Positions 1,743 to 17,794 of a stretch of 64,000 bases of DNA are shown in pieces. Position numbers and translations under genes: made by a program. Every line of letters begins with the position of its first letter. Position 1 is the first letter of the stretch. The stretch covers positions 62,001-126,000 of IMG/VR virus record IMGVR_UViG_3300044846_005229, one strand, 5' to 3'. The notes below the pieces were generated by a model. It saw only the letters and a list, made by a program, of their open reading frames with translations, ran no database searches and was not told the DNA's origin.

Positions 1743-4637
1743 TTATGGACAGTCCGGACATGGGGTCAAATAGAGGGGGGTTCTTTGCGTACATTTTTTC
1801 CAAGACGCGGGATTAAATGGGTCGAAGAAAGTTTCATCAGCGGCCGACAAATCAGCAGCAAAATACGCATAGCCGACCTTATAGTGATTGGCGTCTACTC
1901 TGTAAGATTCTTCGTTTATGACACAAGTAGTAGGGATCTTATAGATACTGGAATCCCAAAGTGGGGCGTCTATACTTTCGATAATTGAATCCCCCAAGTC
2001 ATTAGCTAAGTGGCCGGATAGTCTTCCGCATTCGTCAGCTCTGTAGTAATCTCCTTCCCAATCCCCATAGACTTTATCTGATGTGGCTTCAGTGGTCGCT
2101 CTACGGTCGTGGAGGGGGGCATATTCCACTATTTTGGGCCCTGAGAAATCATCAAAATCAATGTCCGCACCCGGCAATATGGCGGCATTTAGGTAGTCCT
2201 CTTCCAGACCTAGGCCGTACCTTACATTGGAATATAAGTAAGATTCAGAATACAGATAAGTAGGACTCGATGGCTCTAGACCGTATAGAAACACATCGTC
2301 GTAAATCCTTGGTTGCTCTTGCTGAGGGGGACACTCCATGTCTTCTGGAGATAAAGGAGACCCCCATAAGCCAAAATCTTGGCAAATCAGGTTTACTTTT
2401 TGCCACTCTGGCCCGTTCCTTTGGTAGGCCGGTGGTAGCCTTAGGAAATAATTCTCCCAGTTTTCATCACCTACTCCTGAGTTTAAATCAGCCACGAGGG
2501 CATTGTCATACATATCCAACTCTGGTACGGAATTGACCACATACAGGGGCTTCGTCTTCCAGATTCTCAAAGAAGTAGAAGCGTCCATTACGTTGGGGGA
2601 CATGTAGATTTGTAACCCACTGAATACCAAGTTGGAGATGTCGTGTCTAAATGTATAAGTCAGCGAATCCGTTATTATTACTGTCGGGAGTTTAACTTTT
2701 CCCTCGAAAGTCATTGTGTTGTAGGAAAAATTAAAAGTCCCATTTAGGCTGTCAACTGTAAAAACTATTTGGAAGTCCTCAGTTTGATACGGAATGGATG
2801 GCTCTAGTGGTACATCGTTACAAAATACCTTAACAGCATCAAAATTGACAGCTGATGATGGGACAGCAGGGGTGAAACTATTGATGTCTACCCAGTCTCC
2901 TTGCAGTTCCCATTGGGTGCCTACTAACTCCCACCGATTATAATAGAAGATAGATGCCCCCCTTACCTGTGGGTCGGGGTTACTGTAATCCCAAGATAAT
3001 TCCCCATCTTGTAGCTCATCGCCAAAGAGACGGGTATCTCCGATGTACCTTAATTTGGACGGAGGTGAAATATACCAAGGACTCCTCGGCTGATTATCCC
3101 ACCTTGATAAGATCAGGGGGTAAGGGCCCCCCAGGTTTGCCAATAGGTTGGCAATCACATAGCTACTAGTGGATGGGCTAAGGGATGCCGAATTCTCTAG
3201 TTTGATAATTACCCTTGCAGGTAAAATGGGGGCGTCTATGGAAAAGTTTGCCTCATCAGGGTATACTACAGACTGCAGCTGCCAGTGCCCCTCATCAGAT
3301 GGTTTGAACAGGTTGATTTGGCAAGTACCGGATATGACCCCAGACAGACCTATAACTCCATCAGCTTCTGATAGCCCAGTGGCGTCTAAGATCCTAACGA
3401 CTGCCCCGATTGTAATTGGGTCCGTATAGCTAGAGAAACTATTATAATCAGGGAATAGGAAATCAGGGATTAAGGGGAAATTACCATCTTCAGGATACTC
3501 TATCTCCACCCATGGGCCACAGTTGAAGCCGCCCCCGTCGTAAACCGAAAATGATCCTGTCTGGCTATTCCACCAGATTTGATTTTGTTTTGGAGACGGG
3601 GTAGTAGGGCTTACTGCTGCCTTCTGGTAGTAAATGAAATTTAAAATGTCATTAAATGGTATCTTTCTTTCCACTAGCGCCAAATACAGGGAGTTTCTCT
3701 CATCGAAACCGTGTAAGCTAAGACTATCAAATACGAAATTAAATGGTAAAAATCCGCCCTTATTCCCCCAGACCCCTGTAAAATTATCTAAGACGGATTT
3801 GCAATTCCAGTCGCTATTGAATGACCAGGGCAATACCAAGAAAGTTGAGCTATATTCATCATACTTTAATAGGGCATTAATTCCAAGACCTTCTAATTTT
3901 AGATTTGGGGGGATGTCTAGGAACCATGACTTTGTTTCAAAACTATAGGTTGGATCTATGGTAACTTCTTCAGAAATGATGAGCTGTACGGGTTTATCAA
4001 AGTATAGTCTGGACCCCACATAAAATATGTTGAATACATACGGTAAAGAGTATTGGTTATCAAAATCTGGGTGGAGGACTATGGAACCAGTCTCATCCAC
4101 TAGGCTAACCAAAAATGAAGCATCAGCAGAGGTGCCTGGAGTCGGCCTGTAGAATGGGGCTGGTCGAGAACTTTCTATATCAATTTTAATTTGACTACCA
4201 ATAGAATAATCAAGTATGAATTGATCATTAAACTCGCTAATAAACAACGATAAGGATTGGCTATTTTTTTGGACGCCCTTTATTTCGTACGAGTAATCAC
4301 CCAATGTCAAAATTTGACCGATTTGAATTCTGTTATCAGATTCAACGACAATGGAACCTTCCCAGTTCCTAATTTCTTTGACGGCAGGAAATACAGAGCT
4401 ATTGTAAACACCGAAAGTGCCAACCAAGAGTTGCCGTTTTTGGTCTATGTTTGAAGCAAGACTAAACCAGTATTCATCACCGCTCCAACCTAATAGCTGA
4501 GCCAACCAATCTAATTGGTTACTAACTCTGGTTCCAACTTGTTGGACAGATGTAGCTTGACTTTCTGATAGGAATGGATTAGAATACCCATAGAGTTCGT
4601 AGTCGTCTATGTTAAAATTTGGGTAAATTTTGGTCAT
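1743..4637 (-). CDS. Large virion structural protein (baseplate/tail associated, function unknown)
   Basis: 964-aa acidic/aromatic ORF, tightly packed downstream of the baseplate J gene cluster. Confidence 0.55.
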   Translation of the reverse strand: MTKIYPNFNIDDYELYGYSNPFLSESQATSVQQVGTRVSNQLDWLAQLLGWSGDEYWFSLASNIDQKRQLLVGTFGVYNSSVFPAVKEIRNWEGSIVVESDNRIQIGQILTLGDYSYEIKGVQKNSQSLSLFISEFNDQFILDYSIGSQIKIDIESSRPAPFYRPTPGTSADASFLVSLVDETGSIVLHPDFDNQYSLPYVFNIFYVGSRLYFDKPVQLIISEEVTIDPTYSFETKSWFLDIPPNLKLEGLGINALLKYDEYSSTFLVLPWSFNSDWNCKSVLDNFTGVWGNKGGFLPFNFVFDSLSLHGFDERNSLYLALVERKIPFNDILNFIYYQKAAVSPTTPSPKQNQIWWNSQTGSFSVYDGGGFNCGPWVEIEYPEDGNFPLIPDFLFPDYNSFSSYTDPITIGAVVRILDATGLSEADGVIGLSGVISGTCQINLFKPSDEGHWQLQSVVYPDEANFSIDAPILPARVIIKLENSASLSPSTSSYVIANLLANLGGPYPLILSRWDNQPRSPWYISPPSKLRYIGDTRLFGDELQDGELSWDYSNPDPQVRGASIFYYNRWELVGTQWELQGDWVDINSFTPAVPSSAVNFDAVKVFCNDVPLEPSIPYQTEDFQIVFTVDSLNGTFNFSYNTMTFEGKVKLPTVIITDSLTYTFRHDISNLVFSGLQIYMSPNVMDASTSLRIWKTKPLYVVNSVPELDMYDNALVADLNSGVGDENWENYFLRLPPAYQRNGPEWQKVNLICQDFGLWGSPLSPEDMECPPQQEQPRIYDDVFLYGLEPSSPTYLYSESYLYSNVRYGLGLEEDYLNAAILPGADIDFDDFSGPKIVEYAPLHDRRATTEATSDKVYGDWEGDYYRADECGRLSGHLANDLGDSIIESIDAPLWDSSIYKIPTTCVINEESYRVDANHYKVGYAYFAADLSAADETFFDPFNPASWKKCTQRTPLYLTPCPDCP

Positions 4638-4638
4638 T

Positions 4639-5934
4639 TTATTCTACAATGATTAGATCATCAGATAGTGCTAAGTATTCTTGATTCATGCAAGTATCGG
4701 GGGTCATCCAAAGGGCCGAATAATTATCCACTTGCTCGTATAGGTTAATCAAGTTGTCATCCCATGGCCTTGTAAGCCATTCTGCAATGGGTTGGTAATC
4801 TGCATTTACAGACTCTCTGATGTCAAAAATTTTCTTTACCTCATAACTCGGGGAAATATCAACTTGAGCAAGTTTACAATAGGTGACTGGAACTTCTTCC
4901 CCCGCACTATTAATTACTATAGATGGCAGACTACCCAGTGGGTGAGCAACAAGAGATACTTCTGATTTACCCGTTGATGGTCCCCTCAGAAGGGAGATAG
5001 TCCCTGAAACAGAAACAGATTGTATGGAAATTTTGGGGTCTGACCACTCGATCTTCCAACCAGTATTAAAAGTGGGTATTGCAATTTTAAATGTAAAGAA
5101 TTGACCCGTACTATCCCTACTAACTTCCACTGTTTCCACAAAAATCCAATCCGGATCAGGGCAGTATGGGTTATCAGGGTACGGTTGCCCAGGGTTATCA
5201 GGATCTTCGTTAAAACAGTTGGTTATAGATAGGGTGGCGCTACCCGTAATTACAGTGTTAGGTGGGCAACGGAATGTTATCTCAGAAAAAGAAGCCGCCC
5301 TGGGGAATTGCCAGTATAAGTACGGCGCTCCAGAATAATATGGAAATACCCCATCGTAATTTCTCCATTCTAGGGTCGCATCATTGCAAAAAGCATATTT
5401 AGGTACGAACCTCCACCCTACCTCAGAATCTGTGCCACTGACGACATTCATTTCGTGACCAGATAAGGAATAATTCTCTACAGAATACAAAGCATAGAAG
5501 GGGGAATCGTCATAGGTCAATTTATAAGCTATCAAATATTGGGAATCAGCCATCCCAACCAATTCTAAATTTATAATGACTGGGCCTATGTAAAGATTAC
5601 CGTGCTCCCAAACTACGGTTCCAGGCTTGATGACTAAAAATTTATCGCCCCCTGATGCAACAACTTCTAGGGAATTAGGGCCAAACGGACTTTCCCCAGG
5701 CGGTAGATACACATAGGCAGACTTCCTATCTAGTCCAAAGTCAACATAGTATCGTTCCGATGCGGCAGGTAACCTACCATAAATAGGTCTACCACCTGGT
5801 ACCCATTCAGTGGGTGTCTCAAACAGGTTATTAGCCTCTTGAAACTGGACGGATAATATAGTACCAAATGTAGGATTAGAAGATGTCTGAATTTCCCCCC
5901 TACCCCCATTTAAAGGCGTGATAATCTGGCTCAT
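4639..5934 (-). CDS. Putative baseplate/tail protein
   Basis: 431-aa ORF overlapping the baseplate J stop by 4 nt. Confidence 0.5.
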   Translation of the reverse strand: MSQIITPLNGGRGEIQTSSNPTFGTILSVQFQEANNLFETPTEWVPGGRPIYGRLPAASERYYVDFGLDRKSAYVYLPPGESPFGPNSLEVVASGGDKFLVIKPGTVVWEHGNLYIGPVIINLELVGMADSQYLIAYKLTYDDSPFYALYSVENYSLSGHEMNVVSGTDSEVGWRFVPKYAFCNDATLEWRNYDGVFPYYSGAPYLYWQFPRAASFSEITFRCPPNTVITGSATLSITNCFNEDPDNPGQPYPDNPYCPDPDWIFVETVEVSRDSTGQFFTFKIAIPTFNTGWKIEWSDPKISIQSVSVSGTISLLRGPSTGKSEVSLVAHPLGSLPSIVINSAGEEVPVTYCKLAQVDISPSYEVKKIFDIRESVNADYQPIAEWLTRPWDDNLINLYEQVDNYSALWMTPDTCMNQEYLALSDDLIIVE

Positions 5935-9597: not shown

Positions 9598-10041
9598 TCA
9601 AGTTCTGTCCCAAATATTGACGGTCAGTTCCACTTCAATTTCCTGGACGTTTCCGCTGTCGCGATCAACGTTGGCAGTAGTGATTGATAGGAATTTACAA
9701 CCGTAGCAGGTGTACGCGCCACCGGCTGGAGCAGATCCTGTACCAGTACAGTCCCTAGGGGTTACTGTAACGGTAACATCTTGACAATTGTAGTTTAACC
9801 AGAAGTTCTCTAATTGCTTGAAGATCGTAGGATCATACGGAGCAGTAAGAGTAACATTATCTGCAGTTCGTGGGCCAACGACATGGTACTTTCGGTTTCC
9901 AGTGCCATTGGCGTATTCGCTCTTTTCGGAAGAATCTTTGATACCACTGAATTTTGTGAAAACAGCGATTAAAGACACCCCGTTGGGAGCTACGAACGAT
10001 ACCTCGTATTGCGACTTTGTTAAAGGTCTGAGAATTGCCAT
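9598..10041 (-). CDS. Tail tube protein (gp19-like)
   Basis: 147 aa with F.KFSGI, ADNVTLT, YTCYGCKF and DRDSGNVQEIEVELTV, the usual contractile tube pattern; strong SD AAAGAGGTG upstream. Confidence 0.75.
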   Translation of the reverse strand: MAILRPLTKSQYEVSFVAPNGVSLIAVFTKFSGIKDSSEKSEYANGTGNRKYHVVGPRTADNVTLTAPYDPTIFKQLENFWLNYNCQDVTVTVTPRDCTGTGSAPAGGAYTCYGCKFLSITTANVDRDSGNVQEIEVELTVNIWDRT

Positions 10042-10069
10042 GGGATCACCTCTTTATTTCCTATCCTTA

Positions 10070-13000
10070 TCAGGACAAGATGTTGGTGATCATAGCGCCA
10101 GAACCGATAAGACCAGATGCACCGAGGCCAACCAAGTTAACCACACGTTCGATGGTGATTTCAGCACGCACGACACGGCGTTCGCGAATGTAGTACTCCA
10201 ATTTGTTATCGTAAAGGCTCTTTATCCCTTGCTTCTGCATGTTTCTATGCAGTTCAGACTATATCATCGTTTTGTAAACAAAACGTCAGGCGCTCGTGGA
10301 TTGTTCACCTGTTCTAGGCTACTTAATCTAGTCGTTGGACCTTGCTTTTATCCCTAAAAGCCTTGGCTGCTGATTGCCTTGTGTTTCAAGGAATTCACTC
10401 CTGAAACCGTCAGGTTTCCCAGCAATTCACCTAATTTCTTTTTATGTCAGACCCCAGTAGTTAAGGACGGACAGCGGGTGTTCCTGTGAGTTGATCATTT
10501 TTGTTAGCGTGAAGGTTATTTATCCTCCACTTCTTCACATTTCTGCAAAGATCAGACTATATCTTCTTCCTTGAAATTCCTTATAAACCTTTGAAGAGTT
10601 TTTGACCTAAACCCGTTTTTCTTTGTGTCCAGATTTAATAATTGACCTAAGAGTATGTCCCCAGGTTTGTTATTTTCAATCCATACTTGTCTAATCTTAT
10701 CCTTCATTCCCTCCAAGTCTTTATTAGAGTTTGGGTGAGCATAACCCCTAGGGGTATTTGAAGAATTTAATCTTGCCTTTGAGATATTCATCCGCCTCTC
10801 TGGTGTCAATGATACACCTTTTAGAGACTCGGCAATACGAAAATTATGGGATTTAGACCTGACATAGTTTTTACGGAGAAATTCGTAGATTCTCTCACCC
10901 CCGACTGAACTCATTCTGAATACTGCATACCATAGACCTTCATGGTCAAGGTACATTTTATTCAAAAGGCGGTGAAGTATAAAGTGTTGCCTCAAGGTGG
11001 GGTAGCACAGATTTTCAGGGTCCGTTTTACTTCCGCCTAGGCATTTTGGAACTATGTGGTGCTCTTCAGTTTTGTGGGACACAGGACGAGTTTTGGGGCA
11101 TTGGTAAATTATTTGCCAATACCACTTTTCCCATTTATTAAGAAAGTGACATTCAAGGAGTGGGGCGCTCGTGGATGGGTTATTATTTTCGGTATTCACC
11201 ATCTAGTCGTTGAACCTTTTGACTACAACTCTATTATAGCATAGAGTCCGAAATAGTCAACTTGGCTGCTGATTACCATAGCTTTCAAACTCTCGTTTGA
11301 AGCCGTAGGCTTCCCAGCAATTCACCCCATTGATCTGCGGATCAGGCAGATAATTTGACGTTACCGTCAAACCACGCATTCAACTCGTTTGAAAGAAACG
11401 ATGTTATTAACATACGTGTAACTGAAGGACGGAGTCGCAGCATTAGCACCACCCGCAGGCATGATCGAATCAGAAGGGCCGTTGGGGCTGTAGAACAGGA
11501 GGATGCCATTGGCGGGGAAGACAGGCTGCAAGGAGCCGTCGTTGGCCAAATAACGCCCTTCAGCTACGCGCAGGCCACGCTCAAGACCGAAGTAGCGAGC
11601 GATGACATCTGTGTCGATGCTATCGGCGGAAGTGTACTTGATACGATCAAGGATCGCTTCGTTGGTCAGCAAGAGGTCGAAAACCGAAGTTCCAAGAACA
11701 GCGGAGTTCGGACGAATGCCGATCTGGTTGGCAACAGCACGCTTCAGAGTCAGGATGTCCTCAATGGGATTAGAGGTTGCACCAGACCATGCGGCAGGGC
11801 CAGTGGCTGTGCCATAAGCGGTGTTGAAGGCGGTCCAGGTTGTAAAACCAAGACCAGTTTGTGAGCCAGGAGTCCCATTGTAGGGCTCGTATGGATTGTA
11901 GCTGCCAGTCACTGAAACAGCTTGAGCAACGGTGTACTCGTAGCTGTTCATCCATTATGTTATCGCGAGGGCTCTTTATCCCTTGCTTCTGCATGTTTCT
12001 ATGCAGTTCAGACTATATCATCGTTTTGTAAACAAAACGTCAGGCGCTCGTGTCAGCTTCATTACTGTTCTAGTAGTATGCTGTTAGTCGTTGAACGTTC
12101 CGTCAATCCCTTGACGGCTTCGCTGCTGATTACCATAGCTTTCAAACTCTCGTTTGAAGCCGTAGGCTTCCCAGCAATTCACCCAATTTTCTAAATGAGA
12201 TCAATCTCATAGGGCCAATGTGTTTAGCCTAGACATCGCATTGCGAGTCTCGACGGCGCGTAGCATTTGTTAACTCAGCGGCTCTTTATCCACTGATTCA
12301 TTACCTTGTCGTTGGTAATGTTCAGACTATATTATTGCCCCACTATGTACACGATTACTGTACTTTGTAAGACATTGGGCGCTCGTGTCAGCTTCATTAC
12401 TGTTCTAGTAGTATGCTGTTAGTCGTTGAACGTTCGTTTTCTCCCGAAAACGCTTCGCTGCTGATTGCCCACGCGGGGGTTCCAGCAATTCACCCAATTT
12501 AGAGTGGACCTACGCTGCGATCGAAATCGTTCGTAAAAAATAATCCACTTGTGCAGGACCTTCTCCTGCGTTCTCGATTCAATAATGTTATCGCAAAGGC
12601 TCTTTATCCTTTACTTCTCTCTGTTTCCAGAAAGTTCAGACTATATCTTCACCCTTATCAGGGTGCTGGGCGCTCGTGTCAGCTTCATTACTGTTCTAGT
12701 AGTATGCTGTTAGTCGTTGGACCTTGCTTTTATCCCTAAAAGCCTTGGCTGCTGATTACCATAGCATCAAACTTTCGTTTGAAGCCGTAGGCTTCCCAGC
12801 AATTCACCCAGTTTTTCTATCAGTTTTTCAACTGACGGAGGCTATCGATCTAACCTCTTCCAAGGTTGTTATCACAAAGGCTCTTTATCCTTTGCTTCTG
12901 TAAATTTACCATCTTTACAGTTCAGACTATATCACCACCCATTTTTGAATGATATCCAATCTAAGTCTTTTGAAGGTACCCAACCTTGCTCAAATTTACG

Positions 13001-15850
13001 AACCATGCGGGACACAGAAGTTGATCTTCTTACTCCCACTAAAGTTGATAGCTTTACTCCACCACATCTATGGTGAAGCCACACATTATAAATTTGATCG
13101 GCGATCATCCAAAGATTTTTGGCTTGTCTACTTGTGGATGTAGCCGTGTTTCTATATGGGGGTATATTATAACCGTGCTTAGAAACAATACTCTTTCCTA
13201 AATTAGGGAGCTTTGTGTAAGCTTTAACTAAATGAGGATGCTTAGTGTTATTCAAAAACCTAGTTATACTTCTAGCTATAAACGGGGTCATTTCCATTTT
13301 ACCTAATAAAAGATGTAGAATGTAATGTTCCCTCGGAGTTAAAGTAACTTTCCAGTGTCGATCTATATGCTCCCAGTTTTTGGGAAATAAGCATTCTGGG
13401 ATGACGTGGTGTTCTTCTACTGAGCCTTTAAGATAGCTAGACCCGTTGGTCCTTCTTTTTTCGACTTTTTGGATTATACTCCAATACCACTTCTCATATT
13501 TACTTGAATAGTGGCAAGTTAGGTGTTGGGCGCTCGTGGATGGGTTATTATTTTCGGTATTCACCATCTAGTCGTTGAACCTTTTGACTACATTCCCATT
13601 ATAGCATGGGAACCGAAATAGTCAACTTGGCTGCTGATTGGCCATTAAGTTGGAGGCTTTCCAGCAATTCACCCTATTATTCTTACCGCGCTAACTAGGC
13701 AACGGCAAGGCCCAAAGATTTAGGCAATTCCCATGCGACCACTTCCTGCTCCAGAGCATAGGGCTCGGAGTCGTAACGGCTTTGGACGTAGGGGATGTTT
13801 GTCATTTGTTAACGCAAAGGCTCTTTATCCCTTGCTTCTACATGTTTCCATGTAGGTCAGACTATATCTTTGCCTTACATTACCATGTAGGGCATTGGGC
13901 GCTCGTGGATTGTTCACCTGTTCTAGGCTACTTAATCTAGTCGTTGAACCTTGCTTTTATCCCTAAAAGCCTTGGCTGCTGATTACCATAGCTTTCAAAC
14001 TCTCGTTTGAAGCCGTAGGCTTCCCAGCAATTCACCCAATTTATTTACGGCACAAACTAATTACCGTAAGCACGACGGAAGTCGTTGATAGCAACACCAT
14101 GTTATCGTAGAGACTCTTTATTCCCTACCTCTGCATGTTTCTATGCAGTTCAGACTATATCATCGTTTTGTAAACAAAACGTCGGGCGCTCGTGGATTTT
14201 TCACCTGTTCTAGGCTACTTAATCTAGTCGTTGAACCTTGCTTTTATCCCTAAAAGCCTTGGCTGCTGATTTCCCTCGCCTTTACGTTAGGGGTTCCCAG
14301 CAATTCACCCAATTTTACAACAGCAAGCTATTTACTGTTCCTTCAATTATGTTATCGCAGGGGCTCTTTATCCCTTGCTTCTGCATGTTTCTATGCAGTT
14401 CAGACTATATCATCGTTTTGTAAACAAAACGTCAGGCGCTCGTGGAGTTTTCATCTGTTCTAGATTACTAACTCTAGTCGTTGAACCTTGCTTTTATCCC
14501 TAAAAGCCTTGGCTGCTGATTACCATAGCATCAAACTTTCGTTTGAAGCCGTAGGCTTCCCAGCAATTCACCCAATTTTTCATAACCCCTCACGGAGTTA
14601 AGCGGCATATGGAATACCGAAGCGCAGGATACGTCCTGCACGAGTTGGAGTGTCTACCACCGGTGCTATGAATAATATACAAAACTTAACGTTTTGCTCT
14701 GCATGTTTCCATGCAGTTTAGACTATATCATCATCTTTGCCTAAGCAAAGAGTCGGGCGCTCGTGGAAAGATTATTCTTGGGTCAGTCACTTTCTAGTCG
14801 TTGAACCTTCTTACTTCACTCTTATTATAGCAACAAGAGACCCGAAGTAAACTTGGCTGCTGATTGCCTCTTTTGCATAGCAAAAGTAAGGTATCCCAGC
14901 AGTTCACCCGATTATTCGACAGGGGTCACCCCCTGAAGGAACCTCATTGATTCGCAATGTTGGTAGACGGTAGCATGAAACCTTGCGCGAGGGTGGTGAG
15001 ACATTTGTTAACGTAGAGGCTCTTTATCCCCTACCTCTCTTTGTTTCCAAAGAGTTCAGACTATATCATCGTTTTGTAAACAAAACGCCCGGCGCTCGTG
15101 GATTTTTCACCTGTTCTAGGCTACTTAATCTAGTCGTTGAACGTTCCGTCAATCCCTTGACGGCTTCGCTGCTGATTACCATAGCATCAAACTTTCGTTT
15201 GAAACCGTAGGCTTCCCAGCAATTCACCGGATTTTCTTTGTTAAAAACAAAGCCACTCCTTTAAATGGGCAATATGTTATCGCAAAGGCTCTTTATCCTT
15301 CACTTCTTTACATTTCTGCAAAGGTCAGACTATATCATCATCCTTTAACTCCCATGCTGAGGAGTCAAGGAGCTGGGCGCTCGTGGAGTTTTCATCTGTT
15401 CTAGATTACTAACTCTAGTCGTTGGACCTTGCTTTTATCCCTAAAAGCCTTGGCTGCTGATTGCCTCTTTTGCATAGCAAAAGTAAGGTGTCCCAGCAGT
15501 TCACCCAGTTTTCTGCCATCATTAAAATGACAGGGACCCTAATTAATCCACACCTGCGTAGGTCTGTTGTAGCATTATGTTATCGTAAAGGCTCTTTATC
15601 CTTCACTTCTTTACATTTCTGCAAAGATCAGACTATATCATCAACTTGCAAGCAAGTTGTCGGGCGCTCGTGGATTGTTCACCTGTTCTAGGCTACTTAA
15701 TCTAGTCGTTGAACGTTCGTTTTCTCCCGAAAACGCTTCGCTGCTGATTACCATAGCATCAAACTTTCGTTTGAAACCGTAGGCTTCCCAGCAATTCACC
15801 CGATTTTCATCCCAAGGTTACCCTTGAGCGGAACCGCCATGATTCATCAT
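10070..15850 (-). CDS. Major capsid protein (lambda gpE-like), spliced from 14 exons: 15850-15842, 15572-15546, 15269-15265, 15001-14950, 14672-14616, 14343-14334, 14094-14063, 13802-13722, 12860-12853, 12579-12543, 12263-12226, 11952-11414, 10495-10464, 10198-10070
   Basis: Joined exons total 1056 nt in one open frame, 351 aa: MMNLQQTYAGVDPILTTLAQGFMLPSTNIANFIAPVVDTPTRAGRILRFGKEQFAINDFRRAYGTNIPYVQSRYDSEPYALEQEVVAWELPEEVIENAGEGPAQVDLRAVETRNAMSRLMNSYEY...PSFSYTYQLTGTPAVRPEYYIRERRVVRAEITIERVVNLVGLGASGLIGSGAMITNILS*. The DP.LT..A.G, FGKE.F, W....SNPIEDI and PSF.YTY motifs and the position after portal-protease-decoration fit a gpE-type capsid. Confidence 0.9.
10199..10463 (-). ncRNA. Group I intron 13 of MCP (265 nt)
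   Basis: P/Q/R/S core; P1 UCCU/GGGG; terminal G. Confidence 0.9.
10552..11202 (-). CDS. Intron-encoded HNH homing endonuclease with NUMOD3-like DNA-binding motif
   Basis: EEHHIVPKCLGGS...PENL...RQHFILHRLL; RIAESLKG...RMNISKA; the last codons (DIV*) are the intron S element. Confidence 0.82.
   Translation of the reverse strand: MVNTENNNPSTSAPLLECHFLNKWEKWYWQIIYQCPKTRPVSHKTEEHHIVPKCLGGSKTDPENLCYPTLRQHFILHRLLNKMYLDHEGLWYAVFRMSSVGGERIYEFLRKNYVRSKSHNFRIAESLKGVSLTPERRMNISKARLNSSNTPRGYAHPNSNKDLEGMKDKIRQVWIENNKPGDILLGQLLNLDTKKNGFRSKTLQRFIRNFKEEDIV
11233..11260 (-). promoter_or_regulatory. Sigma70-like promoter inside intron 12 P6 region
   Basis: TTGACT-16nt-TATAAT with extended -10 TG, about 30 nt upstream of the HNH ATG. 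Confidence 0.65.
11953..12225 (-). ncRNA. Group I intron 11 of MCP (273 nt)
   Basis: P/Q/R/S core; P1 GGCU/GGCC; terminal G. Confidence 0.9.
12264..12542 (-). ncRNA. Group I intron 10 of MCP (279 nt)
   Basis: P/Q/R/S core; P1 GUGGAU/GUCCAC; P10 GCGUAG/CUACGC; terminal G. Confidence 0.92.
12580..12852 (-). ncRNA. Group I intron 9 of MCP (273 nt)
   Basis: P/Q/R/S core; P1 GAGGU/GCCUC; P10 UCGAU/AUCGA; terminal G. Confidence 0.9.
12932..13567 (-). CDS. Intron-encoded HNH homing endonuclease
   Basis: EEHHVIPECL...LTPREHYILHLLL HNH-type motif; lies inside intron 8. Confidence 0.8.
   Translation of the reverse strand: MVNTENNNPSTSAQHLTCHYSSKYEKWYWSIIQKVEKRRTNGSSYLKGSVEEHHVIPECLFPKNWEHIDRHWKVTLTPREHYILHLLLGKMEMTPFIARSITRFLNNTKHPHLVKAYTKLPNLGKSIVSKHGYNIPPYRNTATSTSRQAKNLWMIADQIYNVWLHHRCGGVKLSTLVGVRRSTSVSRMVRKFEQGWVPSKDLDWISFKNGW
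13598..13625 (-). promoter_or_regulatory. Sigma70-like promoter inside intron 8 P6 region
   Basis: TTGACT-16nt-TATAAT with extended -10 TG, about 30 nt upstream of the HNH ATG. Confidence 0.65.
13803..14062 (-). ncRNA. Group I intron 7 of MCP (260 nt)
   Basis: P/Q/R/S core; P1 UUACGGU/GCCGUAA; P10 GUUUGU/ACAAAC; terminal G. Confidence 0.92.
14095..14333 (-). ncRNA. Group I intron 6 of MCP (239 nt)
   Basis: P/Q/R/S core; P1 ACAGU/GCUGU; P10 AUAGC/GCUAU; terminal G. Confidence 0.9.
14344..14615 (-). ncRNA. Group I intron 5 of MCP (272 nt)
   Basis: P/Q/R/S core; P1 CGGU/GCCG; terminal G. Confidence 0.9.
14673..14949 (-). ncRNA. Group I intron 4 of MCP (277 nt; terminal A)
   Basis: P/Q/R/S core; P1 GAAU/GUUC; P10 AUGAG pairs with the 3' exon UUCAU; last base is A. 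Confidence 0.85.
15002..15264 (-). ncRNA. Group I intron 3 of MCP (263 nt)
   Basis: P/Q/R/S core; follows the 5-nt exon CCCAT; P1 CCAU/GUGG; terminal G. Confidence 0.88.
15270..15545 (-). ncRNA. Group I intron 2 of MCP (276 nt)
   Basis: P/Q/R/S core; P1 GGAU/GUCC; terminal G. Confidence 0.9.
15573..15841 (-). ncRNA. Group I intron 1 of MCP (269 nt, no ORF)
   Basis: P GGTGAATTGCTGGGAA, Q AATCAGCAG, R GTTCAACGACTA, S ATGATATAGTC; exon ends in U with a P1 U.G pair; terminal G. Confidence 0.9.
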
Positions 15851-15972
15851 AATAGATGATTTCCTTTTCTAGGTTGACTTCAAAGATTGCCTTGGCAATC
15901 TAACCCCAAAAGTTCGAAAACTCTAGGGTCACTGTAGTTATACCCACACTTTGCTAATGGAAGCCTAACCAT

Positions 15973-15999
15973 AAAAAAAGGAGCCCTTTTCGGAGCCCC
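15973..15999 (-). terminator. Rho-independent terminator between decoration gene and MCP
   Basis: Minus strand GGGGCTC-CGAAAA-GGGCTCC followed by T7. Confidence 0.65.
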
Positions 16000-16584: not shown

Positions 16585-17001
16585 TTAGGTTAGGAGTTTT
16601 GATACTCTGGATGGCTGGAAGGTAAGGCTGAATTGGGCTACCTCTCCACTATCACGACTGAATTTTGGTAAGGAATAGCCAATTAGTTGGCACCCGGTGA
16701 GTCGATATTGGGAGGTTACTTCTATGCCATCCGTTGGGGTGATCCCAAACTCTAGTGTGAAGGAATCTTCGGACCCCTTCTTAGTACCAAGGTGTTCTAC
16801 ACAGTAGTTAATAAGATCTTTATAGTAAATCGGGTCAAAGCATGATCCAATCGTGATAGGGTCATATGACACTGTTGTGCCAATCTTGTGGGCCTTTAAT
16901 TCAGATGCAGTTATAAAACTTGCCCTATAATTCATTTCCCCGACATCCTGTGACAGGGAGATTTCTATGTGACATTCTGCAATTGGTCTAAGGATGGCCA
17001 T
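16585..17001 (-). CDS. Second tail-tube-like protein (divergent paralogue)
   Basis: Probable start is MAILRP at 17001, the same N-terminus as 9598-10041; shares Y.L.GC and RDSG.V..F.L. Confidence 0.65.
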   Translation of the reverse strand: MAILRPIAECHIEISLSQDVGEMNYRASFITASELKAHKIGTTVSYDPITIGSCFDPIYYKDLINYCVEHLGTKKGSEDSFTLEFGITPTDGIEVTSQYRLTGCQLIGYSLPKFSRDSGEVAQFSLTFQPSRVSKLLT

Positions 17002-17032
17002 TTTAGTTCTCTTTTTGTAAATTTGTGTAAAA

Positions 17033-17794
17033 TCAACGGTAATCAACGATACAGCGGCATCTGTCATAGCATCTGCATCTTTGTCCAGGAAGTGGTAAGG
17101 AACCGATTGGTTGCCAACCTAACTTCTCATATTCTTTGCAATCTCTGCAAGTTTTCTTATCTTTTTTGGCAACTCGCATCATTTCTTTATGGCCTTGTTC
17201 TTCCTTAACTAGGTAATCCCCCAGTTGGAAAAATGCGTAAGCTGGGGTAACAAGGTAGCGAGAAACCCTAGAAAAAACCCCTTGCCAGGTTTGCCCCACA
17301 CCGGAATCAATCGAATTCTGTATGGCATTCTGGACCTCGGGATCCTCCGAATCGTAATCAGGATCCTCTAAAATATCCCAATCATAGTCGCCAGATGGAC
17401 CTTTGGAGGCAAAATCCATTTCGTTACCAACGATGGAGATTACATTACTATCAAATCGAGCCTTTGTCACATCGAGGAATTTAAGTAATGGTGGCACCAA
17501 TTGTCCAACAACTGTTGGCCATGCTTTTTCCAATTTTGCTTTAGGCTTCGATGATGCTGACCCAAGGTAGACTCCTGCTAAAGATGCCTCTAAGGTTTTG
17601 TCAACCATGGCACGAGAAAACTCGTCCCACTTTATGTCTTTGTCCTTCAGAGACTTAACTAAAAGCTTAGAATCCTTAAGCATCATACTCTCTAGGTTCC
17701 CGATGGTTTTAGCTTTTTTGGCCAGGGATTCGGCATTAGAGAAAAAATCTCCCCTCCTTTTAGTGACAGAGCCAATCAGGGAGAGGAGATCCAT
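17033..17794 (-). CDS. Head morphogenesis protein (Mu gpF / SPP1 gp7-like)
   Basis: C-terminal D.KTCRDC...LPLPGQRCRCYDRCRC motif; located in the head module. Confidence 0.6.
   Translation of the reverse strand: MDLLSLIGSVTKRRGDFFSNAESLAKKAKTIGNLESMMLKDSKLLVKSLKDKDIKWDEFSRAMVDKTLEASLAGVYLGSASSKPKAKLEKAWPTVVGQLVPPLLKFLDVTKARFDSNVISIVGNEMDFASKGPSGDYDWDILEDPDYDSEDPEVQNAIQNSIDSGVGQTWQGVFSRVSRYLVTPAYAFFQLGDYLVKEEQGHKEMMRVAKKDKKTCRDCKEYEKLGWQPIGSLPLPGQRCRCYDRCRCIVDYR

Follow-up and report, generated by a model that had tools for sequence, protein, structure and literature searches.

A phage major capsid gene interrupted by 13 group I introns

Descriptions of group I introns in phages usually concern a single intron per gene, and only seldom two or three. 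The question raised by the locus at positions 10070-15850 (minus strand) of the stretch described here is whether 14 coding segments separated by 13 such introns can constitute one working major capsid gene, and how so many introns came to lie in it. The window (the whole stretch of DNA that was analysed) covers 64 kb of a 279-kb contig, which is likely to derive from an uncultured freshwater (lake) myovirus whose closest relative in culture is Synechococcus phage S-CBWM1. The locus is interpreted here as a single capsid gene with 13 introns of IA type, which is spliced and which was built by the selfish spread of the introns; this reading is considered very likely (probability of about 0.88). 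Thirteen introns are more than were found reported for any phage gene in the literature searched.

Organisation of the locus and identity of its product

Exons were mapped by spliced alignment of an uninterrupted homologous coding sequence (contig L005, positions 4177-5232) to the window, which gave 14 blocks, and the final exon borders were set on top of these blocks by the rule that an exon ends in U and an intron in G. Together with the Rfam matches, this alignment resolved one major capsid gene of 14 exons and 13 group I introns (Table 1). Introns total 4725 nt, or 81.7% of the 5.8-kb locus, and the joined exons form a stop-free frame of 1056 nt with a product of 351 aa. This product differs from that of the uninterrupted L005 gene by 3 aa (25 nt), and the 14 exons are colinear with the 341-aa major head protein of S-CBWM1. 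T is the last base of the upstream exon at 13/13 splice sites, the 3' terminal base is G in 12 of the 13 introns (A in intron 4), and the codons split by introns read AT/T, T/TT, GT/A, CT/G and T/AT in the joined frame. The numbers of introns and exons, the joined frame and its product, the terminal bases, the split codons, an intron content rounded to 82% and an expected gap-free match to intronless homologues had been part of an original prediction made without database searches, and all of them held.

The start codon was placed at 15850, with an AAGGA ribosome-binding site about 10 nt upstream, and the 5' UTR upstream of exon 1 is contiguous in L005. The Rfam match for intron 1 starts at 15911 and puts P1 about 60 nt too far upstream; comparative data favour the start codon at 15850, which was also the predicted one, over this placement. 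The orthologue of intron 1 is missing from the spliced contigs L005 and L084 (see below).

Table 1. Exons, introns and intron-borne open reading frames of the capsid locus (site, position in the joined coding sequence; a slash marks the interruption of a split codon)
Feature	Position	Strand	Description	Evidence
Exon 1	15842..15850	-	9 nt; ATGATGAAT; start codon 15850	Spliced alignment to L005
Intron 1	15573..15841	-	269 nt; site 9, phase 0	RF00028, 98 bits
Exon 2	15546..15572	-	27 nt	Spliced alignment
Intron 2	15270..15545	-	276 nt; site 36, phase 0	Rfam, 83 bits
Exon 3	15265..15269	-	5 nt; CCCAT	Spliced alignment
Intron 3	15002..15264	-	263 nt; site 41, phase 2, AT/T	Rfam, 90 bits
Exon 4	14950..15001	-	52 nt	Spliced alignment
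Intron 4	14673..14949	-	277 nt; site 93, phase 0, A-ending	Rfam, 94 bits
Exon 5	14616..14672	-	57 nt	Spliced alignment
Intron 5	14344..14615	-	272 nt; site 150, phase 0	Rfam, 88 bits
Exon 6	14334..14343	-	10 nt	Spliced alignment
Intron 6	14095..14333	-	239 nt; site 160, phase 1, T/TT	Rfam, 90 bits
Exon 7	14063..14094	-	32 nt	Spliced alignment
Intron 7	13803..14062	-	260 nt; site 192, phase 0	Rfam, 94 bits
Exon 8	13722..13802	-	81 nt	Spliced alignment
Intron 8	12861..13721	-	861 nt; site 273, phase 0; putative endonuclease ORF inside	Rfam, 46 bits; nhmmer split match
Intron-8 ORF	12932..13567	-	211 aa; putative HNH-type homing endonuclease	PHROG 655, 6e-21; HH..N..H motif
Exon 9	12853..12860	-	8 nt; GAAGAGGT	Spliced alignment
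Intron 9	12580..12852	-	273 nt; site 281, phase 2, GT/A	Rfam, 102 bits
Exon 10	12543..12579	-	37 nt	Spliced alignment
Intron 10	12264..12542	-	279 nt; site 318, phase 0	Rfam, 58 bits
Exon 11	12226..12263	-	38 nt	Spliced alignment
Intron 11	11953..12225	-	273 nt; site 356, phase 2, CT/G	Rfam, 86 bits
Exon 12	11414..11952	-	539 nt	Spliced alignment; Pfam PF03864, 1e-8
Intron 12	10496..11413	-	918 nt; site 895, phase 1, T/AT; putative endonuclease ORF inside	Rfam, 57 bits
Intron-12 ORF	10552..11202	-	216 aa; putative HNH-type homing endonuclease	PHROG 655, 5e-30; weak HNH matches
Exon 13	10464..10495	-	32 nt	Spliced alignment
Intron 13	10199..10463	-	265 nt; site 927, phase 0	Rfam, 81 bits
Exon 14	10070..10198	-	129 nt, including the TGA stop (10070-10072)	Spliced alignment

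The uninterrupted L005 ORF served as query for the joined capsid protein. Matches were obtained to Pfam PF03864 (Phage_cap_E) at 33.7-35.1 bits (cutoff 22.9), PHROG 1005 (major head protein) at 2e-52 across residues 2-335, and PDB entry 3bjq at 5e-28; identity to the annotated major head protein of S-CBWM1 is 68% (59% for the exon 12 piece). The predicted gpE-like capsid protein was thus confirmed by homology: the product is very probably a major head protein of Phage_cap_E/HK97 type, the HK97 fold resting on sequence evidence only. Its position in a head-morphogenesis module also supports this identity: along the minus strand, the genes for sheath, portal and head protease and two small ORFs precede the capsid gene, and after it come a gene whose 147-aa product weakly matches a tail-tube-like Pfam family (T4 gp19) and then baseplate. 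As predicted, the gene escapes ORF callers: standard programs give only a 194-232-aa fragment of it, and exon 12 is the only piece that they recognise as Phage_cap_E.

Codon differences from intronless alleles are in synonymous:non-synonymous ratios of 21:3, 161:34 and 163:37, and this synonymous excess makes it very likely that the capsid gene is under purifying selection. A second capsid homologue was not found in the window, and a search of 185,579 bacterial or archaeal genomes found no close relative of the capsid protein and did not reveal the host.

Ribozymes and putative intron-borne endonuclease genes

Rfam model RF00028 (gathering score 50) gave 13 matches, all of them on the minus strand in the interval 10199-15841, and none elsewhere in the 64-kb window. 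Twelve introns scored 57-102 bits; the remaining match (13294-13731, in intron 8) was sub-threshold at 46 bits because the ORF insert interrupts it. The core motifs GGTGAAYTGCTGG and GTYCAACGACTA each occur 13 times on the minus strand, all within 10329-15800, against about 0.01 copies expected by chance. Single copies of the core motif or of the 3'-tail motif were also present in more than 100 other viral contigs, and the motifs are not specific to the capsid gene.

Conservation of the ribozyme fold was assessed from paired positions. Compensatory changes were found in 29/47 predicted pairs among the 11 ORF-less introns of the window, and over 87 distinct family members the helices P3, P6a, P7.1, P8, P9 and P9.2 were paired in 82-100% of cases, versus 35-60% when the partner was slid; P7 is invariant across these 87 introns. 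From both results, selection on the ribozymes is very likely. The Rfam alignments contain a 30-nt insertion between P7 and P3', the site of the extra stems P7.1 and P7.2, for which compensatory pairs number 3/4 and 1/3, respectively, in the 87 introns. The prediction of an extra stem at this place and of subgroup IA therefore held, and the introns are likely to form one IA-type family, an inference from sequence in which the finer assignment to IA2 relies on resemblance only, without a subgroup-specific model.

The U before the 5' splice site is shared by 207/209 mapped relatives, one of the two exceptions being an unreliable mapping in the divergent contig L038. Every intron of the window has a G-containing guide of its own, which gives a P1 of 4-7 bp that can form within the intron's own exon, even the 5-nt exon 3. 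The predicted U.G-containing P1 was accordingly found in each intron, with weak statistical support (mean of 5.2 pairs versus 4.1 in mismatched exon/intron combinations). An in-frame stop precedes the ribozyme core in 13/13 introns, which is not clearly above the other two counts by frame (11/13 and 8/13). Neither P1 length nor these stops, being not clearly above controls, were counted as evidence.

The ORFs in introns 8 and 12 have a visible EEHH(I/V)P...N...H motif and their own near-consensus predicted promoters (promoter-like sites at 13625-13598 and 11260-11233, respectively); the start of the intron-8 ORF overlaps P7.1-P3'. No match was found for either ORF in Pfam, and NCBIfam and PDB gave sub-threshold HNH matches only. 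Together with the PHROG matches of Table 1, these data indicate that both are likely HNH homing endonucleases, their cleavage of an intron-less target being inferred only indirectly, from the site specificity of their C-terminal domains and from the co-conversion-like clustering of exon differences described below. The endonucleases of the family have a common HNH domain and site-specific C-terminal domains. The 11 other introns of the window are without an endonuclease gene (lost or never present); one of them, intron 4, which has a degenerate 3' tail, is a derivative with the endonuclease gene deleted and a promoter-like remnant at 14851-14824.

Intron polymorphism and spliced forms in related phages

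Related contigs have 0-13 introns at 16 distinct sites of the capsid gene, 30 of these contigs being without any intron, and endonuclease-bearing versions are known at 11 of the 16 sites. The count of sites excludes site 86 of the truncated contig L025, which is doubtful, and the incomplete map of L038, which has at least 11 introns; the intron sites 889 and 895 of L052 and L037 were read directly from the sequence. Insertion sites fall where conservation of the gene is highest. The intron tree sometimes places copies from different sites as mutual closest relatives. Exon 13 carries 9 synonymous differences from an allele without the two flanking introns, and 14 of the 25 exon differences are no more than 15 nt away from sites that differ in occupancy (p = 1e-7). 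The HNH endonucleases, the presence/absence polymorphism of introns and endonuclease genes, and these exon tracts resembling co-conversion make selfish homing and spread within the gene the likely origin of the array.

The intron-rich versions recur between samples. Over 16.5 kb, contigs L001 and L002, which come from two samples, match at 100% identity, and L003 matches at 99.98%; versions with 9-13 introns, identical or variant, were recovered in over 10 assemblies made independently (JGI, ENA and Logan). The terminal A of intron 4 is also present in 5 orthologues of close relatives.

Intron-free forms of sister genomes were found in samples of RNA type. Contigs L005 and L084 correspond to the 127-kb contig L006 minus 11/11 introns, with 0 mismatches in 5.4 kb, and L027 corresponds to the 85-kb contig L017 minus 3/6 introns, cut at the predicted junctions with 100% identity. 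L027 keeps the introns at sites 9, 36 and 75, which are its three 5'-most ones, and the three downstream have been removed; the intron spliced out at site 895 is a different variant from that of the window. The L006 copy of the A-ending intron 4 (99.6% identical) is absent from the spliced contig L005. The sample of L027 (3300012708) is listed as an rRNA-depleted metatranscriptome; for that of L005 (3300012770), metatranscriptome status was inferred from adjacent identifiers that are listed so. With this reservation on the library type of L005, precise in-situ splicing in sister phages is very likely. As a separate observation, L005 has a chimeric 3' end.

No RNA-derived contig of the exact 13-intron allele was found in contig searches. 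The allele-specific spliced junction (exons 12-13-14) had no exact match in IMG/VR, the two-junction pattern had no match in JGI metagenome contigs (a collection without the sample of L005), no evidence of splicing at sites 36 and 927 was found in RNA-type contigs, and the partially spliced ORF of L027 had no exact-sequence match. Splicing of the window's own allele, sites 36 and 927 included, is considered likely by analogy with the sister phages. Three findings had been named beforehand as refuting the prediction, namely a joined protein without homology to capsid proteins, an assembly artefact and the absence of spliced junctions; the first is answered by the capsid matches of the product, the second by the recurrence of the array in independent assemblies, and the third by precise spliced forms of two sister genomes, not of the window's allele.

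Proposed mechanism, rival explanations and known systems

In the proposed mechanism, a pre-mRNA of about 5.8 kb would be transcribed from the locus and each ribozyme would fold independently, with pairing between the intron's internal guide and the final 4-7 nucleotides of the exon, of which the last is invariably U. Excision would proceed by two transesterifications, started by guanosine, and ligation of the 14 exons (some of 5-10 nt) would yield the 1056-nt mRNA for the 351-aa HK97-type capsid protein, any capsid protein thus requiring all 13 splicing events. Two caveats apply: intron 4 is without the terminal G by which the 3' splice site is defined, and the presence of 13 near-identical cores in a single transcript could lead to misfolding or exon skipping. 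The array itself would result from selfish spread and not from a benefit to the phage: intron copies with site-specific HNH homing endonucleases would enter intron-less alleles when phages co-infect a cell, with flanking exon sequence carried over, copies would occasionally jump to new sites within the same highly conserved gene, and decay of the endonuclease genes would leave ORF-less ribozymes, which must keep splicing because the capsid gene is essential. Self-splicing without protein and the history of homing and transposition are, like the splicing of this exact allele, inferred from sequence alone, and are regarded as likely. No adaptive role of the array has been shown. Among the roles originally suggested, only selfish accumulation has positive evidence (endonuclease genes, polymorphism, co-conversion-like tracts), and a timing gate or a protection against CRISPR or rival endonucleases remains speculation.

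One alternative, which remains possible, is that some introns are not autonomous and need a host or phage protein (maturase or chaperone), folding coupled to translation or a fixed order of removal, splicing being then a regulated step that is rate-limiting for heads. It is supported by the retention in L027 of the 5'-most introns when downstream ones are gone, by exons of 5-10 nt that leave neighbouring introns nearly touching, and by the A-ending intron; moreover, in vivo splicing of T4 group I introns is known to be poor unless the upstream exon is translated. Against it, P1 of each intron can form inside its own exon, only 2/13 introns encode a protein, which is nuclease-like and not maturase-like, and a single assembled contig is uninformative on kinetics.

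A second alternative, considered unlikely, is that the array helps the phage, either because the endonucleases cut the intron-less capsid genes of rivals or because the interruptions remove targets of CRISPR, restriction or rival endonucleases. Two endonuclease genes with their own predicted promoters and insertion where the capsid gene is most conserved are in its favour, and an intron endonuclease has been reported in the competition between phages PhiPA3 and PhiKZ (PMC11620839). However, 30 related contigs live without introns, 11 of the 13 introns of the window have no endonuclease gene, and conserved targets would suit a selfish homing element equally. A bolder form of this idea, equally doubtful and inferred from the sequence, makes the capsid gene a battleground in which site-specific endonucleases, expressed from promoters of their own, would cut co-infecting intron-less alleles, which would be converted or excluded. 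If it were true, the sweep of a capsid allele through a lake population would be decided by its intron load, the need for 13 splicing events would determine when heads are assembled and in what yield, and the lineage would be a natural system in which to measure viral gene drive and expression limited by splicing.

It is very unlikely that the introns have inactivated the capsid gene, some of them having lost the ability to splice and the phage being defective or using another capsid gene. The A-ending intron 4 with its degenerate 3' tail, the three introns retained in L027 and the restriction of the search for a second copy to 64 kb of a 279-kb genome could be read in this way, but the exons are under strong purifying selection, all ribozyme helices are kept by compensatory changes, a fully spliced 11-intron sister exists from which the A-ending intron has been removed too, no second capsid homologue lies in the window, and the genotype is widespread across many samples. 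An assembly artefact, in which a metagenome assembler mishandled a repeated intron sequence and collapsed or expanded it into the capsid gene, is all but excluded: the intron copies are 58-88% identical to one another, repeats can mislead assemblers and L005 is chimeric at its 3' end, but every copy is distinct with its own guide sequence, the same 16.5 kb was obtained from two samples (and nearly so from a third), JGI, ENA (megahit and scaffolded assemblies) and Logan all provide variants with 9-13 introns, and intron removal restores a perfect ORF.

Under the preferred reading of a spliced capsid gene colonised by selfish introns, the graded series of 0-13 introns over 16 sites is a natural experiment on intron load in an essential and very highly expressed gene, and informs how introns reach new sites and shed endonuclease genes. 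The correct folding of many near-identical ribozymes within a single transcript is a further question that the locus poses. Because gene callers report only a fragment, a hallmark gene for recognising and classifying phages is missed or truncated in such genomes, and metagenomes from lakes commonly contain them. The ribozymes, compact at about 240-280 nt and tolerant of very short flanking exons, could interest RNA engineers.

Several known systems share part of this organisation. The orf142 gene of Staphylococcus phage Twort is reported to have three group I introns (Landthaler & Shub 1999) and is similar in having several related self-splicing introns and short exons in a single phage gene; it differs by its 3 introns versus 13, the exons here being as short as 5 nt and occupancy varying from 0 to 13 over 16 sites. 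The crAss-like phages of the Zeta group have a capsid gene in five fragments and as many as 14 introns in a whole genome (PMC7886860). They are likewise uncultured phages in which group I introns fragment the major capsid gene and defeat gene callers, but with 4 capsid interruptions there versus 13 in one 1-kb gene here, and with another capsid family and environment; their density per genome was called "unprecedented", whereas no other gene in the 64-kb window has introns. In Cluster J mycobacteriophages, one group I intron interrupts the capsid gene and its splicing was demonstrated (PMC3706429), so that a product needed in bulk is again concerned, with a single intron per interrupted gene. 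Jug (jumbo gut) phages have about 18.5 group I introns per genome, with terL in 2-3 pieces and half of the introns validated by metatranscriptomes (PMC12880540); these large uncultured phages also have interrupted essential genes and metatranscriptomes as evidence of splicing, but their introns are distributed at 1-2 per gene over many genes instead of being concentrated in one.

The introns of T4 td, nrdB and sunY and other phage IA2 introns are known to carry endonucleases (cf. PMC2988022). The likeness to these extends to the ribozyme class with P7.1/P7.2, the looped-out endonuclease ORF with its own promoter (predicted here), and homing with co-conversion of flanking exon sequence (inferred here); unlike the introns described here, they occur one per gene of nucleotide metabolism, and the HNH-type endonucleases here have domains swapped from site to site. 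Outside phages, mitochondrial cox1 of Agaricus bisporus has 19 introns, 18 of them of group I (PMC2987802), and is similarly a conserved gene acting as a reservoir of group I introns, with polymorphic sites and endonuclease genes decaying to a varied degree. However, cox1 belongs to an organelle of a eukaryote, spans about 30 kb and has large introns from several lineages, whereas the capsid gene described here is a 5.8-kb virus gene with compact introns of about 270 nt that belong to a single family.

Joined capsid gene and recurrence of the array

The sole long ORF between the introns matched Pfam Phage_cap_E and showed 59% identity to the major head protein of Synechococcus phage S-CBWM1, its closest record in the phage collection; this 341-aa protein is encoded without interruption and is colinear with the short translated pieces lying between the Rfam matches of the window. 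Among the IMG/VR relatives of the long exon, contig L005 carries an uninterrupted 1056-nt capsid gene (99% protein identity), whose spliced alignment to the window gave 14 blocks, exon boundaries being set so that the exon ends in U and the intron in G. The joined window exons form a stop-free frame of 1056 nt (351 aa) that differs from L005 by 3 residues and 25 nucleotides, with a summed intron length of 4725 nt; the last base was T in 13/13 upstream exons, and a terminal G was found in 12/13 introns. The original prediction, made from sequence alone, had proposed this frame, the length removed, these exon and intron ends and five split codons, all of which held. Its identification of the product as a gpE-like capsid protein held as well, since the natural intronless protein of L005 matches PHROG 1005 “major head protein” (2e-52), Pfam Phage_cap_E and PDB 3bjq (5e-28). 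Genes for the tail sheath, portal and head protease are found upstream of the capsid gene, and one for the baseplate downstream; elsewhere in the window, the DNA polymerase gene is uninterrupted.

The array is not the assembly artefact that would have refuted the prediction: it is identical or nearly so in independent samples and recurs in three different assembly routes. Over 16.5 kb, the window shares 100% identity with contigs of two separate samples (L001, L002) and 99.98% with one of a third (L003); the downstream 147-aa protein was present in 93 blocks of the collection (look-up). In the long contigs examined from JGI, ENA and Logan, this capsid gene holds 9-13 introns, and only a 194-232-aa fragment of it was recognised by gene callers in every case.

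When IMG/VR was searched with the long exon, 80 related loci were recovered, whose capsid gene contains 0 to 13 intron cores. Comparison of 46 intron-bearing loci with 30 intron-less alleles gave 16 well-supported insertion sites (CDS positions 9, 36, 41, 75, 93, 150, 160, 192, 273, 281, 303, 318, 356, 889, 895 and 927), and the frame was stop-free after intron removal in every site combination mapped. Thirteen introns are also present in a second lineage (L052, L315, L317), but its sites are in part different ones; two of its ribozymes are only 6 nt apart, where the exon ACACGT separates the site-889 and site-895 introns (L052:9340-9400). At least 11 introns were found in the more divergent contig L038, and no contig with more than 13 in the capsid gene was found among the related loci examined.

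Features located in the window
Feature	Coordinates	Strand	Remarks
Long mechanical ORF (TTG start)	9818-10357	plus	opposite intron/exon array; likely spurious
Twelve group I introns (Rfam)	10235-15911	minus	above curated threshold, 57-102 bits
Exon 13	10464-10495		within CDS 880-927
Promoter, extended -10 sigma-70-type, near-consensus (TTGACT-16-TGnTATAAT)	11233-11260	minus	within P6 extension, endonuclease-carrying intron
Long mechanical ORF (TTG start)	11355-11864	plus	opposite intron/exon array; likely spurious
Sole long ORF between introns	11367-11951
Thirteenth intron (permissive Rfam search)	13294-13731	minus	46 bits; split by ORF
Promoter, extended -10 sigma-70-type, near-consensus (TTGACT-16-TGnTATAAT)	13598-13625	minus	within P6 extension, endonuclease-carrying intron
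Intron 4 (site 93)	14673-14949		ends in A
Weaker promoter remnant	14824-14851	minus	intron 4
5' UTR segment	15851-15911		hairpin (AGATTGCCAAGGCAATCT) and ribosome-binding site
Terminator-like hairpin and T run	15980-15999		between upstream 157-aa ORF and capsid gene
160-aa ORF overlapping 253-aa gene	16585-17067	minus	likely spurious, though called in one JGI record (L316)

Intron number and ribozyme structure

No Rfam match above the curated threshold was found anywhere in the 64-kb window beyond the capsid-gene introns. Each motif proposed for the ribozyme core is present in exactly 13 copies, where chance would give about 0.01. The claim of 13 minus-strand copies held, 12 of them above the curated threshold and one in the more permissive search. 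Repeat analysis of the window showed that the copies are diverged paralogues (58-88% pairwise identity) and not identical repeats. The Rfam match of intron 1 overshoots the real 5' splice site by about 60 nt, into the 5' UTR, which is contiguous upstream of this intron in the spliced contigs.

In the 11 ORF-less window copies, 29 of the 47 predicted pairs retain pairing via changes on both sides. In a family alignment of 87 distinct members from all loci, pairing was kept in 95-100% for P3, P4, P6, P6a, P7, P9 and P9.2 and in 82-89% for P8 and the extra stem P7.1, against at most 60% for slid-partner controls, with compensatory changes in every variable helix. The stems between P7 and P3' probably place the family in subgroup IA, and the paired P7.1 fits the prediction of this subgroup from an extra stem. 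Each intron was also predicted to form a P1 with its own guide sequence; a pairing of 4-7 nt with the upstream exon is possible in every one (including with a 5-nt exon), and each has an in-frame stop ahead of the core, but both features were left out as evidence because neither clearly exceeds its control.

Spliced contigs and RNA evidence

Outside the introns, L005 (intron-less, 5.8 kb) matches the 127-kb, 11-intron contig L006 at 100.00% identity over 4186 nt upstream, all exons (0/1056 differences) and the downstream gene; L005 is L006 minus its 11 introns, cut exactly at the predicted junctions. The L005 protein is also found on three further contigs of only 1.36-1.56 kb, starting 20-68 nt before the start codon. 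The 2.8-kb contig L027 (1-2756) is likewise 100.00% identical to an 85-kb contig (L017:1469-5783), except that 3/6 introns are gone: those of sites 93 (263 nt), 318 (967 nt, with an endonuclease gene) and 895 (329 nt). The three 5'-most introns (sites 9, 36 and 75) are kept, a pattern that might hint at unequal or ordered splicing.

A reading of L005 as a DNA variant is not credible: 11 introns would have been lost without any sequence divergence, and in DNA contigs of this clade a divergence of 1-4% goes with a change of just a few introns. The L027 sample (IMG 3300012708; 43.099, -89.405) is listed as a rRNA-depleted metatranscriptome in the supplement of bioRxiv 10.1101/2022.02.15.480533, and on this listing L027 is treated as RNA-derived. 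The IDs either side of the L005 sample (including 3300012771 and 3300012778) are listed likewise, while no own entry was seen for 3300012770 (the L005 sample), 3300012772 and 3300012777 in the examined portion of the listing; an RNA origin of L005 and the related contig L084 is thus inferred from adjacent IDs, with high confidence.

Ten of the 13 window sites are occupied in L006, all of whose introns are absent from L005, and the introns at these common sites are 84-99.6% identical to those of the window, except at site 273, where the window copy additionally carries an endonuclease gene. Splicing at window site 895 is covered by L027, but with a different intron variant, and none of the spliced contigs gives RNA support for sites 36 and 927. 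No spliced contig of the window's own 13-intron allele was found in the contig collections searched (including IMG/VR and JGI metagenomes); the predicted spliced junctions were seen for sister genomes, in L027 (sample listed as RNA) and in L005/L084 (very probably RNA-derived), and not for the window allele.

Intron 4, the only one not ending in G, is a deletion derivative of an endonuclease-carrying intron of the same site, with a degenerate 3' tail and without the P9.2 hairpin. It also has a G-to-A change just past the P7 3' strand (GTCTA in place of GTCTG), by which pairing with the dinucleotide preceding the splice site could become stronger. Its 99.6%-identical orthologue in L006 is nevertheless missing from L005, apparently removed by splicing.

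At its end, L005 is chimeric: its final 96 nt (5742-5837) repeat part of the capsid long exon, as can happen in contigs of transcripts with very high coverage. This RNA-type contig also reads through the terminator-like hairpin ahead of the capsid gene.

Inferred intron mobility and comparison with known systems

Two window introns are protein-coding, intron 12 (216 aa) and intron 8 (211 aa). Both products match PHROG 655 “homing endonuclease” and contain an HNH-like motif, with only weak backing from Pfam, NCBIfam and PDB. Both ORFs begin directly after P7, overlapping P7.1-P3', and each is preceded by the near-consensus promoter of its intron, which suggests that the endonucleases may be expressed independently of late capsid transcription. 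Family-wide, endonuclease-carrying versions were found at 11/16 sites; the endonucleases of different sites have a common N-terminal nuclease domain (mostly 35-66% identity) and C-terminal halves that are conserved within a site and unrelated between sites. In the intron tree, same-site introns mostly cluster, several sites hold two or three lineages, and some copies pair most closely with copies from another site, as with sites 150 and 356, 9 and 93, and 273, 281 and 895.

Insertion sites fall in the most conserved stretches of the capsid gene (P = 0.004). The window and L006 differ at 25 exon positions, 14 of which are no more than 15 nt from the four sites of differing occupancy (p = 1e-7); such clustering is the pattern expected from co-conversion during homing. 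Thirteen of the 25 differences from the L006/L005 allele are found in the 48 nt of CDS 880-927, which include exon 13 and flank introns 12 and 13, absent from that allele; all but one are synonymous, and they may represent a co-conversion tract or changes protecting the endonuclease target. Taken together, the mobility evidence supports, without showing it, a likely scenario wherein endonucleases would drive homing of introns into capsid alleles, introns would occasionally move to new sites inside the gene, and resident introns would later lose the endonuclease gene. The adaptive roles suggested in the original prediction (a timing gate on head assembly, or protection from rival endonucleases or CRISPR spacers) remain untested proposals; its observation is confirmed and its structural interpretation supported.

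More than 100 unrelated viral contigs from many environments (L086-L165, L205-L281) contain a single copy of these ribozyme core and 3'-tail motifs, so that the intron family itself is ordinary and the pile-up in one gene is what is unusual. Phage capsid genes with group I introns have been described before, and 13 in one gene is an extreme case. Cluster J mycobacteriophages have one in the capsid gene (PMC3706429); crAss-like phages of the Zeta group have a capsid gene in five fragments and up to 14 introns per genome, a density called unprecedented (PMC7886860); Jug phages have 18.5 introns per genome on average, their interrupted genes being split into 2-3 fragments (PMC12880540). Twort orf142 holds three group I introns. 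In the literature searched, no phage or bacterial gene near 13 introns was reported. The nearest cultured relative of the window phage infects Synechococcus, and the nearest analogue in architecture to its capsid gene is fungal mitochondrial cox1, which in Agaricus bisporus has 19 introns (PMC2987802).
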